From Hemiscyllium ocellatum (taxonomy: Eukaryota): a stretch of DNA of 64,000 nucleotides. The notes under the pieces were generated by a model. It saw nothing but the letters and a program-made list of their open reading frames with translations, was not told the origin of the DNA and made no database searches. The stretch is taken from NCBI RefSeq assembly GCF_020745735.1, contig NC_083405.1, forward strand, positions 76,474,345 to 76,538,344, in the 5' to 3' direction. The position numbers were made by a program, and so were the translations under genes. Below are positions 14,020 through 16,828 of the stretch, piece by piece; position 1 is the first letter of the stretch, and each line of letters begins with the position of its first letter.

Positions 14020-16675
14020 ATCTTTATGGGTTTGAGCTTTTGACCTACTCTCAAGTAGAAACTTCTACTTCACGTCGACTCTATTTATAATTTAGTAATA
14101 GTAAAAACCTGTAGAGAATAGGACCCCAACCTGCTTAGTCTTTCCTGATAATGCTGAAAAAAGTTTCAAAGAGAATACTGAGACTGAGTGTATGAATGAA
14201 TTGCACAGTTCAAGCGTAAACATGGCTGACTGAATGGCAACTTCTTGTGGATAATACTGCTCCTAATCTAACCACAATGCATCACACCCAGCATCAAAAG
14301 TAATAACCCCAACCATTTAATATGTTTACACATCAAGATAAACCACTAGCCTACAGTAAAGGTTAACTCTCCATCATTGGAGATAACTCTCAGATGTCGC
14401 CTGAATTTAACCAGTGATCTAAAAGACAAGTAGTTTAGTGAAGTGCTGATTGATGATGAGGAATCTGAACTCATTTCTCATCTTCTAACAACTCTCTAGA
14501 GAAGGGATTCTACTCACTCAAACAAGCCAATATAGCAAGTCAGCATACACTAACCTGAAACTGCCTGCTCCCGGTGTCTGGTAAGAAGGGTATGTTGAGG
14601 CATTGGGCTTGGCATAATAAAACATCTGGGAGACTTCAGTGAACATGATAACCCAGAAAGAGATTAATGAACAAAATTTATTAATGCTGAACTTTTTCAT
14701 TCAGATTGTAGTATGCCAATTGTGGAACAGTAATGTTGTGAATTAAATTTGACCATTAGTAAGTTACTCAAATTAATAGCAACACATCCTTGACAATATA
14801 TTCTCAACAAGACTGGGATTATACACCTTTACAGATTTATCACATCTACAGGACATAATCACACTGTACTGGTAAAGCAGAGAAAGTAAATTGAAACAAT
14901 ATGAAATGTTTGCCAGATCACAATGCAGCATATAAGTGAACAAATAGGCAATGTCATAAGCAAGTGAATAAACACAAAGTAATAAAAGGCATAAATATAA
15001 ATAAATGTTTCATAAGGGTCAATGAAAATATACTTAACATCGCATTTTACATTGAGAAGGTGTGCTATTAAAAATATTGATTTTTTGCACAGAAATATTG
15101 AAAGAAATAAGATATGCATAAGCAAGAAATGCTTATATAAAGATAATGGCAGCAGATTCCCGGCACTGTTTGTTACCTGTGTAGACAATTGTAAGTTGTG
15201 TATTACTGAAGGCTCTGCTGCTCCTTTTGATCTTCAATCTATAGAATCTCCCCAATTTATACTCTCTTCAACCCACTCCGATCTCTCAATGAAAGAACGA
15301 CTCACTGAGCACAGACAATATACAATTTACAGATACCTCGATCAGATATCATAACACTTTGAAAATCTCAGACTTTTTTCTACCTGTCTTTGTAGAACAT
15401 GCTTTATAGGACATGCTGTAGCGTACGTCACTAATGAATTTATGCAAAAGTGACATTGTTAACTGAAGGTATAAATACAAATTAACGAATACTGCCATTA
15501 TAATGTTAAATTATATTTAAAAGAATGGAATTCATGAGCTAGCCAGTTTTATACTTGTAATTATGGAACCACTTCCTATGAAAACATAGTTATAATGAAA
15601 GATTAGAATATTTTATTTAGAGATGAATAAATAAATATTTAAACAATTTTTTTTATCAAAGTACGGAAGGTGATCTAATTCAGCAAAATCTGAAGTCCTC
15701 TGAATTAATGTTCAGAATAAATAATTTTCAAAGTAGCGCATTAATATACTTTTGAACTCAAGTATGACGAATATATCCTTTAATGTGATGCTCAGCTGGT
15801 AGGTTTTGAGATTATTATGCTGTAGATACAATGATCCAGTTGAAATTTCATTTTGAAGTTATACACAGGATGTTTTGCAGCTGCACTGTCCGATGGCAGG
15901 ATATTGGAATAAAAACTGGTCAGTTGAGAAGTATCTTGAAACAAGGAAGGTTCACTGGGTGTGCTAATCGAACAACACGAGCATTATTTTGGTAACATTA
16001 TCTGCACAACACCATGAAGGTTATAATTGTGCAGAGTATCCTTGCCCTTCCATGTATCCGCTAATCTTACCATTTAAACCAATCCCTGTGGAAACATAAT
16101 TTCCAACTCTTACAGATTCAATTGCTATTGATCTGAATCCAGAAGAATTTCCTCATTCAACAATGGCAGAGAATACTTTGTTTGTCAGGTAAAGTTTCTT
16201 CTAAATTCATTTGATAGGAGAATAAAATTCATTAGGTGATTGAGGATGTTAGCCGACTGTGTTCATTTCCAGAGTGTCAACCTGATGTCCCATTGTAACT
16301 TCTATTTGTTTCTGATGAATCCTGTTGCTGGCCTCAGCCACTGCAGCAAGGTTAGATGTTACACCTTATGATAATAATGAATATCTATTGTTCTGTTTTG
16401 TTTATGGCAAAACATACTAAAAAGGTTCTGCAGTACAACTGCAAACAATAATAAAAATAGACACAGTTATCTTCATCAGCTTGGCTACCTGGAACTTCAC
16501 AGTGACTAGAAACTGTACTGAGTAAGCATGGCAAAACTATTAAATAGTGCAGCAAAGTGATCACAAACAGCGGTTCCATGTGATGTTCAGGAAATCAAGG
16601 TAATATGATGTTTATTACAATACAGTCCAACTTTGTACAATGGATAAGGGATGATGATGAGGTGTTGCATCATTC

Positions 16676-16690
16676 AGGTCATTCTGACCT
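16676..16690. promoter_or_regulatory. Perfect palindromic oestrogen response element (IR3)
   Basis: AGGTCA-ttc-TGACCT, exact consensus; ends about 55 bp before the TATA box and about 140 bp before the ATG of biotinidase copy A. The match is exact; function is inferred. Confidence 0.75.
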
Positions 16691-16743
16691 CAGTTTCCTT
16701 CTGGAGTACACATTGGATATTAACTGTTGTGCAACGTCTGAGG

Positions 16744-16750
16744 TATAAAT
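16744..16750 (+). promoter_or_regulatory. TATA box of biotinidase copy A
   Basis: TATAAAT 85 bp upstream of the ATG; preceded by inverted CCAAT (ATTGG 16712-16716) and C/EBP-type GTTGTGCAAC (16726-16735). Confidence 0.65.
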
Positions 16751-16828
16751 TGTCATAGAGTCAAATATCCAGACAAACTTTGATTGCAGTGCTGCTACTT
16801 AACTGTTGTACTGAAACATCATTTAGTT

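Follow-up and report, generated by a model that had tools for sequence, protein, structure and literature searches.

A perfect oestrogen response element upstream of a biotinidase-like gene of the epaulette shark, possibly completed recently by a single base change

The upstream region of a biotinidase-like gene of the epaulette shark contains a perfect palindromic oestrogen response element (ERE). The element, AGGTCA-ttc-TGACCT (AGGTCAttcTGACCT), is read directly at positions 16676..16690 (no strand assigned) of the analysed stretch of 64,000 nucleotides, called the window below, and is located 153 bp upstream of the ATG of the first of two tandem gene copies, copy A. With two inverted AGGTCA half-sites, a spacer of exactly three nucleotides (the IR3 arrangement) and no mismatch, the 15-bp palindrome is, by its sequence, a genuine canonical ERE, and its left flank extends the half-site to CAGGTCA. 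We suggest that this ERE became complete only recently, in the last ancestor shared by epaulette and bamboo sharks, in the TATA-containing and CpG-depleted promoter of copy A, and that it confers a response to oestradiol; we regard this reading as evenly poised between right and wrong. The original prediction had placed the element at these positions and had considered a chance match unlikely (about 0.004 per 64 kb), and our analysis agrees on both points: In a scan of the window that allowed up to two mismatches the ERE was the sole match (shuffle mean, 3.16), a perfect ERE occurred in 2 of 100 shuffles, and the number of perfect EREs expected by chance is between about 0.003 (our arithmetic at 40% GC) and 0.02 per 64 kb. 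For a perfect ERE that falls no more than 200 bp from one or the other ATG, base-composition arithmetic gives an expectation of about 2e-5 for the window, and summed over the proximal promoters of a whole genome the expectation is well below 1. The ATG of copy A is at 16829 and not at 16830.

Both gene copies match Pfam PF00795 and PF19018 (CN_hydrolase and Vanin_C), structures of human pantetheinase are matched at 3.5e-93 to 5.2e-93, and the best database matches are shark proteins called biotinidase(-like). On the + strand, copy A comprises exon 1 (16829..17041, with the ATG, a signal-peptide-like N-terminus, 71 codons and a GT donor), exon 2 (17476..17625, 150 nt) and exon 3 (18823..19989, with part of the CN_hydrolase domain and Vanin_C); the exons of copy B, on the same strand, are found at 32426..32638, 35882..36031 and 44609..45781, the last one being 96% identical to exon 3 of copy A. 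The exon-1 open reading frame, used as a query against short transcripts and genomic ORF fragments, gave no match. The catalytic Glu-Lys-Cys triad of copy A is incomplete: Glu is kept (FPEKG), and in exon 3 Lys is replaced by Arg (KYQRW) and Cys by Gly (ITGFD). Copy A of the bamboo shark has the Cys to Gly replacement only, and the triad is retained in copy B and in all other sharks compared. Since two of the triad residues are replaced in the epaulette shark, its copy A is a family member by descent and probably has no enzyme activity. The branch on which copy A lost the catalytic Cys is also the one to which the gain of the ERE is assigned. The reading frame of copy A (510 codons) is intact in two genera, and its dN/dS against the bamboo shark is 0.60, a value that is borderline different from 1 (our chi-square). 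Copy A is under weak constraint only, and mere drift could account for both the gene and its promoter.

The stretch upstream of copy A is likely to be a real proximal regulatory region, since about 350 nt are conserved in blocks between the two paralogs as well as in the single-copy BTD genes of Heptranchias (a sixgill-type shark) and Pristis (a sawfish). As had been predicted, this region (16470..16828, + strand) is homologous to its counterpart in copy B (about 32066-32425): Aligned locally, the 360 nt in front of the two ATGs score z = 10.6 against shuffles. The direct match between A and B in the 100 nt in which the ERE is embedded is weak if taken alone, being equalled by 37 of 1000 shuffles. 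The neighbourhood of the ERE is collinear between the aligned upstream block and exon 1, and the orthologues bridge A and B. The two upstream regions differ: that of copy A is CpG-depleted and has a TATA box, that of copy B has retained its CpGs and is TATA-less. The TATA box of copy A (TATAAA, GTATAAAT; 16744..16749, + strand) lies about 60-61 bp downstream of the ERE; the four orthologues of copy A all have it, and it is missing from every B copy and outgroup. Transcription of copy A is predicted to start at about 16771-16776 (CCAGACA), which would place the ERE at about -95. Between -400 and -1, the observed/expected ratio of CpG is 0.14 and 0 in the two hemiscylliid A copies, 0.43-0.49 in those of Stegostoma and Rhincodon and 0.77-1.18 in the B copies, as compared to 0.26 for the whole window. 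The proximal promoter (77-78% identity) is no better conserved than the sequence further upstream (82%), and the promoter of copy A has many indels.

All motifs that had been named around the ERE are at the predicted places. GATAAG (16643-16648) and ATTGG (16712-16716), both read directly, as well as the GTTGCATCA motif (16664-16672) are found in hemiscylliids only. The latter lies inside a 9-nt insertion, TGCATCATT (16666..16674, + strand, placement ambiguous by 1-2 nt), directly 5' of the ERE, that gives rise both to GTTGCATCA and to a direct repeat TCATTC...TCATTC and is missing in the alignments from the A copies of Stegostoma and Rhincodon and from the B copies. The repeat raised the possibility that the left half-site was born by a tandem 9-nt duplication; we did not adopt it, as it requires more substitutions than an insertion plus one transition. 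A second hemiscylliid insertion of 16 nt (16749..16764, + strand, placement ambiguous) separates the TATA box from the conserved ATATCCAGAC block. The motif GTTGTGCAAC (16726..16735, + strand), which we take to be C/EBP-like, is seen in the alignments as GTTGAGCAA(T/C) in copy A of Stegostoma and Rhincodon, as GTTGAGTAA in Rhincodon B and as GTTGACCAA in Pristis; epaulette B and Heptranchias have a deletion of this block. Thus, of the inducible liver-type promoter that had been proposed, the TATA-type, tissue-restricted appearance stands, but beyond the TATA box and the C/EBP-like GTTGNGCAA the motifs are confined to hemiscylliids.

The comparison of the orthologues and paralogues suggests in which direction the palindrome evolved. 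The corresponding site of copy B, AGATCA-tttc-CGACCC, is present at 32317..32332 (+ strand) as described before; it has an ancestral-type left half, three half-site mismatches and a 4-nt spacer and is no IR3 element. Copy A of the bamboo shark Chiloscyllium punctatum contains the identical ERE at the same distance to the ATG (locus L001:4848-4862). The aligned sites read AGATCAatcTGATCT in Stegostoma A, AGATCAatcTAATCT in Rhincodon A, AGATCAtttcCGACCC in epaulette B, AGATCAttttCGACCA in Rhincodon B and AGATCAttatCAACCG in Stegostoma B, and all five have the left half AGATCA; among the aligned sequences, AGGTCA is limited to copy A of the epaulette and the bamboo shark. Compared to the ERE, copy A has two mismatches in Stegostoma and three in Rhincodon, and the site has decayed further in this sister lineage (TGATCT, TAATCT). 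In Heptranchias the region is deleted, in Pristis it is replaced by a CT-rich run, and the upstream sequence and intron 1 of the elephant shark gave no alignment to the shark promoters. Since AGATCA occurs in both paralogs and in the sister species, it is the older left half, with GACC as the older right core, and since AGGTCA is limited to the two hemiscylliid A copies, the perfect ERE is most simply explained as derived in the Hemiscylliidae, the family of epaulette and bamboo sharks, by a single A-to-G change. Judged from these alignments, the site of copy B is a precursor that was never completed and keeps the older state, so that the label of a broken ERE that it had received is wrong. 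The two sites are indeed homologous by position and differ by a few point changes, to which a 1-nt difference in the spacer has to be added. Of the gain or loss of a hormone response that had been left open, the palindrome itself points to gain, from AGATCA to AGGTCA, and not to loss. Lamniform and carcharhiniform sharks, whose copy A promoters would fix the polarity best, are outside this comparison, as are the orthologous promoters of Scyliorhinus torazame, Mustelus, Carcharodon, Cetorhinus, Heterodontus and the newer Chiloscyllium assembly.

According to our proposal, the ancestor of A and B would already have had a near-palindrome, AGATCA-ttN-(T/C)GACC. Copy A would have acquired the 3-nt spacer and an intact right half, TGACCT, and the A-to-G transition from AGATCA to AGGTCA would then have completed the element in the hemiscylliid ancestor. 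A dimer of the oestrogen receptor (ER) on the ERE would make copy A inducible by oestradiol in ER-expressing tissue, most likely in the liver or the reproductive tract of maturing females, while copy B would have kept a constitutive-type, TATA-less promoter with its CpGs. Receptor binding, hormone induction, tissue and transcription start are what we infer from the promoter sequence. The receptor itself exists: The P-box CEGCKA is retained in the ERs of chondrichthyans, and with picomolar oestradiol they activate a reporter under the control of an ERE; the ERs of the elephant shark are among those that do so with an ERE reporter, and transcripts for ERalpha and ERbeta are listed for the epaulette shark (PMC13026664). 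In the literature we found no report of an oestrogen-induced biotinidase in any vertebrate. In a study of oestrogenic compounds in trout liver, a biotinidase probe is down in three of the six treatment columns, whichever treatments these represent (PMC2516568).

A neutral origin of the ERE is a serious rival to this proposal, and we consider it quite possible, if short of an even chance: copy A would be a relaxed or slowly decaying duplicate, in which one of about ten substitutions on the hemiscylliid branch completed a pre-existing one-mismatch palindrome by chance. The ERE may then bind the ER in vitro without any selected or physiologically meaningful response in vivo, for instance if the promoter were closed in ER-expressing cells or copy A barely expressed. 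Conservation of the ERE in the orthologues of copy A, the absence of which had been named beforehand as speaking against the original prediction, is indeed absent in Stegostoma and Rhincodon, yet this also fits a recent gain. Conservation beyond neutral expectation was not detected with Chiloscyllium (identical) or Stegostoma and Rhincodon (diverged): The neutral identity between epaulette and bamboo shark is 94-96%, so that 15 bp remain unchanged by chance nearly half of the time and the identity of their EREs is uninformative on constraint. Moreover, the polarised promoter substitutions are symmetric (10.5 on the hemiscylliid and 8.5 on the sister branch) and give no sign of directed remodelling or of a hemiscylliid excess. 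The step from a one-mismatch precursor to the perfect ERE has a neutral chance of roughly 1-2% on the hemiscylliid branch, which is not negligible across a genome-wide scan. The slightly lower conservation of the indel-rich promoter as compared to its upstream flank, a CpG ratio that does not exceed the genome background, as is found in methylated DNA without constraint, the dN/dS value, the loss of two of the three catalytic residues and the further decay of the site in the sister lineage all suit a neutral history. On the other hand, the expectation for a perfect ERE that close to an ATG is very low, the reading frame has remained intact in two genera, and the TATA box has been retained in every copy A orthologue. 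In addition, a perfect ERE beside a TATA box is the design of the standard minimal ERE reporters, and by this analogy the element should respond wherever the promoter is open.

Two further readings were considered. It is quite unlikely, in our opinion, that copy A is transcribed from a promoter about 3.2 kb upstream near HACL1 and spliced into the acceptor-like ttgattgcag at 16781-16790, which would make the ERE an intronic sequence, either an enhancer or nothing. In the bamboo shark copy A is preceded by HACL1, the ancestral position being kept, and the BTD genes of the elephant shark and of man both have an exon 1 further upstream that adjoins HACL1 (in Callorhinchus at 68 bp, head to head, with the signal-peptide exon 7.8 kb downstream); several sequences have a YAG directly 5' of a conserved TGCTGC block. 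However, Heptranchias has CGG in place of the putative acceptor and epaulette B has TCG; the AG is therefore no conserved splice site, and its use is unlikely. In copy A of Stegostoma and Rhincodon the A of this YAG follows the first T of the TATA box by 30 nt (our count), the usual distance from a TATA box to the start, and the protein model of Pristis begins at an ATG 18 nt further upstream, collinear with the genome. Copy B has the homologous upstream block without any HACL1-side promoter. This copy is located about 12 kb 3' of copy A, and its promoter must therefore be in or near the duplicated stretch. Still less probable is that another factor is involved, be it at a CAGATCA site that copy A of the hemiscylliids has lost, or COUP-TF, RXR partners or ERR at the AGGTCA repeats. 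Amid varying flanks, the heptamer CAGATCA is the same in all five sequences, which come from two paralogs and three species, but to our knowledge no factor recognises it. AGGTCA half-sites are common to many nuclear receptors; nevertheless, an inverted repeat with exactly 3-nt spacing is the ER-type arrangement, and the other receptors prefer direct repeats, IR0 or IR1 elements or extended monomer sites. The 5' extension TTCAGGTCA does not correspond to TCAAGGTCA, the monomer site of ERR/SF-1.

If the ERE works in the way we propose, it would show, in an unusually clean natural case, how one point mutation creates a hormone response element. With the precursor state preserved in the tandem paralog and in the sister species, the promoters before and after the change are open to direct comparison. 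A working ERE would also provide a physiological context, female reproduction, for a biotinidase paralog that is probably catalytically dead, and a non-classical gene would be added to the few oestrogen targets known in cartilaginous fish. Without such a response, the locus would illustrate that neutral change can turn a near-match into a perfect consensus site even close to a promoter. It is tempting to speculate, doubtful as we consider this, that the completion of the ERE and the loss of the Cys are one neofunctionalisation, in which a duplicated biotinidase became an oestrogen-induced, secreted and non-hydrolysing carrier of biotin or biocytin from the maternal liver to plasma or yolk. The regulatory switch, if true, could be traced to a single A-to-G transition, whose ancestral state both the paralog and the sister lineage still retain.

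One of the closest known systems is the promoter of single-copy BTD. Copy A adjoins HACL1 as do the BTD genes of man and of the elephant shark (locus L004), and its exon organisation is that of human BTD, the middle exon having 150 nt and the last one being large. In the elephant shark, exon 1 is separate and stands head to head with HACL1, whereas in the shark copies A and B, in Heptranchias and in Pristis translation starts in the signal-peptide exon with the conserved block directly upstream. Unlike single-copy BTD, copy A has added a TATA box and lost CpGs. If copy A were a hormone-induced, non-catalytic biotin binder, avian avidin and the biotin-binding proteins of yolk would be a possible physiological analogue. 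Avidin is induced by progesterone and oestrogen (cited in PMC13425791), but cartilaginous fish already have avidins (PMC13425791), so that there is no obvious vacancy for such a binder. The avidin protein family is unrelated to copy A.

With respect to the promoter, close counterparts are the oestrogen-induced yolk-precursor genes of the liver of egg-laying vertebrates, Xenopus vitellogenin A2 and chicken vitellogenin II and apoVLDL-II, which have consensus EREs. Like these genes, copy A has a perfect inverted repeat, (A)GGTCAnnnTGACC(T), 5' of a TATA-type promoter, encodes a product with a signal-peptide-like N-terminus and comes from a vertebrate that is oviparous. The vitellogenin A2 element has the left flank CAGGTCA in common with it. 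In contrast to them, copy A has only one element, which is much nearer to the core promoter and whose target is a biotinidase-like gene, and this element is confined to one shark family rather than widely conserved. The inferred ancestral site of copy A, AGATCAttcTGACCT, with one perfect half-site and one single change, resembles the one-mismatch EREs of human TFF1/pS2 and Xenopus vitellogenin B1. As the G at position 3 of the half-site is a base-specific contact of the ER, this ancestral site may have bound the receptor poorly; the modern hemiscylliid site differs from the EREs of the TFF1/pS2 type in that it has no mismatch.

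The promoter region of copy A contains a perfect oestrogen response element (ERE), AGGTCAttcTGACCT, at 16676-16690, exactly where the original prediction had placed it, 153 nt before the copy A ATG (16829) and 61 nt before the TATAAA sequence (16744-16749). Each of the further promoter motifs that had been listed was also located in its place. The element is the only ERE match in the window even if up to two mismatches are allowed (shuffled sequences: mean of 3.2), and a match without mismatches occurred in 2 of 100 window shuffles. From the base composition of the window, the chance of a perfect ERE is about 4.7e-8 per position; this corresponds to an expected 0.003 sites in the window and about 2e-5 in the 200-nt stretches preceding the two ATGs, which bears out the claim that an ERE so close to a start codon is improbable by chance. 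Chance would supply one to two hundred perfect EREs per whole shark genome and less than one over all its proximal promoters, and the copy A site is thus rare at its location. Despite this rarity, scanning many windows will turn up chance perfect EREs.

An alignment anchored on the heptamer CAGATCA and the preceding (G)ATGA allows the site to be compared between species. Epaulette and bamboo shark A have AGGTCA, the spacer ttc, and TGACCT. The left half-site is AGATCA in Stegostoma A (spacer atc, right half-site TGATCT), Rhincodon A (atc, TAATCT), epaulette B (tttc, CGACCC), Rhincodon B (tttt, CGACCA) and Stegostoma B (ttat, CAACCG, followed by an insertion). Among the single-copy BTD promoters, proposed for polarizing the change, the elephant shark sequence gave no alignment with the shark upstream regions, the segment is deleted in Heptranchias, and a CT-rich run occupies its place in Pristis. 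The direction comes from the B copies as outgroup. By parsimony, the copy A ancestor would have been AGATCA-ttc-TGACCT, one mismatch from the consensus; an A-to-G change on the hemiscylliid branch would have completed the palindrome, and the Stegostoma/Rhincodon branch would have harmed the intact half-site instead. The suggested gain or loss by a few point changes can therefore be narrowed to a single completing step, with gain clearly favoured over loss. Since under the most parsimonious history the A/B ancestor lacked a perfect ERE, the copy B site would be an unfinished precursor rather than the broken ERE that had been proposed. At a neutral identity of 94-96% between epaulette and bamboo shark, their common ERE shows only an origin before their split.

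The homology of the two upstream regions could be confirmed. In a self-BLAST of the window at E < 1e-10, the A-B similarity reaches back just 7 nt from the ATG; when the 360-nt upstream stretches of the two genes were locally aligned, the score lay at z = 10.6 over shuffles, and the multiple alignment with the orthologues revealed common blocks in the same order down to the start codon. In Heptranchias perlo and Pristis pectinata, where BTD is single-copy, the same blocks precede the gene, and to judge from the alignments they are a putative regulatory region conserved across sharks and rays. The upstream region must belong to the duplicated unit because copy B inherited no other promoter.

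The two promoters differ in their architecture. All four A orthologues carry the TATA-box sequence GTATAAAT; its position reads GGTGCAAAT in Rhincodon B, and epaulette B and Heptranchias lack the block through deletion. In Stegostoma and Rhincodon A, a conserved YAG-TGC motif lies 30 nt past the TATA box, the spacing expected of a start site; a 16-nt insertion alters this spacing in hemiscylliid copy A and moves the predicted start to about 16771-16776. The observed/expected CpG ratio (-400 to -1) is highest in the B copies (0.77-1.18), lower in Heptranchias (0.64) and in Stegostoma and Rhincodon A (0.43-0.49), and lowest in hemiscylliid A (0.14 and 0), as compared to a window average of 0.26. 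By these contrasts, copy B has kept the marks of a promoter free of germ-line methylation, and copy A shows those of a tissue-restricted, TATA-driven gene. Among the motifs taken as liver-type, the C/EBP-like GTTGNGCAA block occurs in other species, whereas GATAAG, GTTGCATCA (within a 9-nt insertion specific to hemiscylliids) and ATTGG do not.

The window harbors two tandem biotinidase-like genes, both on the plus strand: the compact copy A (exons 16829-17041, 17476-17625 and 18823-19989; 510 codons) and copy B (32426-32638, 35882-36031 and 44609-45781; 512 codons), with introns lengthened by retroelements. Both match Pfam CN_hydrolase and Vanin_C as well as human pantetheinase structures, and their best database relatives are shark 'biotinidase(-like)' proteins, with Chiloscyllium punctatum at the top (89-90% identity). 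HACL1 (about 11822-13580, minus strand, mapped with positions 1-1757 of the bamboo shark locus L001) is the divergent upstream neighbour, about 3.2 kb from the copy A ATG. In the elephant shark, exon 1 of BTD stands apart and faces HACL1 head to head at a distance of only 68 bp. This shared neighbourhood puts copy A at the original BTD position and makes copy B the distal duplicate. Long reverse-transcriptase-like ORFs of LINE type lie between the genes (28114-29908, plus strand) and in copy B intron 2 (40476-43126, minus strand), both at strong GC-skew excursions, with related fragments at 24091-24896, 39620-40430 and 50886-51793. The minus-strand ORFs downstream of copy A (22025-23441), the last of which is a FLYWCH-type zinc finger, so called at the orthologous bamboo shark place (L001:11409-11639), are probably a transposase-derived element. 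A 368-nt direct repeat (44151-44518 and 46590-46957, 98% identity) places the segment immediately preceding copy B exon 3 again about 800 nt past the gene end, with the exon absent; it may be a remnant of another partial duplication. In Stegostoma, an insertion breaks the copy B upstream region right after the ERE-like site (L003:14609-14700 of its locus), a B-type exon 1 could not be located in the 600 nt that remain of the locus, and this copy may be damaged or rearranged.

In the nitrilase-type catalytic triad of copy A (exon 3, 18823-19989), Lys is replaced by Arg and Cys by Gly. Bamboo shark A has only the Cys-to-Gly exchange in common with it, and the triad is kept in Stegostoma A, Rhincodon A and all B copies. 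The branch assigned to ERE completion is thus also the one on which the nucleophile was lost; given the single lineage, this coincidence counts as one observation. A dN/dS of 0.60 between epaulette and bamboo shark indicates weak constraint on copy A. The identity of A and B rises from 70% in exon 1 (16822-17046 vs 32419-32643) to 83% in exon 2 (17420-17640 vs 35832-36046) and 96% in exon 3 (18813-19987 vs 44599-45770), and in the full-length protein tree the paralogs cluster by species. This pattern points to putative gene conversion of the 3' exon, with the 5' end and the promoter remaining distinct. Cetorhinus, Carcharodon, Mustelus and Scyliorhinus likewise show the exon 1-2 signatures of A type (FPENG, ...LQLNS...) and B type (FPEDG, ...LNPxxKIPS; proteins P0005-P0013), so that the duplication seems to predate the orectolobiform sharks, though the tree suggests recent duplicates.

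Does the element matter for copy A? Chondrichthyan oestrogen receptors retain the ERE-reading P-box and switch on an ERE reporter at picomolar oestradiol, and ERalpha and ERbeta transcripts exist in the epaulette shark (PMC13026664). With its ERE 60 bp from the TATA box, copy A resembles a minimal ERE reporter in layout, and given these working receptors its fragment is very likely to respond in transfection. That the ERE would render copy A oestrogen-responsive in the animal is an even bet. It is somewhat less probable that the perfect ERE is a neutral by-product without meaning for copy A: between hemiscylliids and Stegostoma/Rhincodon, the proximal promoter, at 77-78% identity and with over 60 gapped columns, is conserved slightly less well than the more distal upstream DNA (82%), and derived substitutions are symmetric between the branches (10.5 hemiscylliid, 8.5 sister). 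Together with the neutral-level identity of the two hemiscylliids, the sequences do not demand selection on the ERE; the rarity of the site at its location stands beside this. We regard it as improbable that the promoter in use lies elsewhere. Use of the site by another factor seems most improbable. A transcript-fragment search with the exon-1 ORF found nothing.

Our literature search found no paper tying biotinidase to oestrogen induction. Where trout were given oestrogenic compounds, a liver biotinidase probe went down in three of six treatment columns, here not assigned to individual compounds (PMC2516568). Avidins are present in cartilaginous fish (PMC13425791); a role of copy A as an egg biotin carrier is thus possible, yet there is no gap that needs it. 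The copy A site provides a testable case of cis-regulatory gain linked to a pseudoenzyme. In form it is an ordinary consensus ERE, as in the vitellogenin and apoVLDL-II genes; new here are the target gene of the ERE and an origin traceable to one step.
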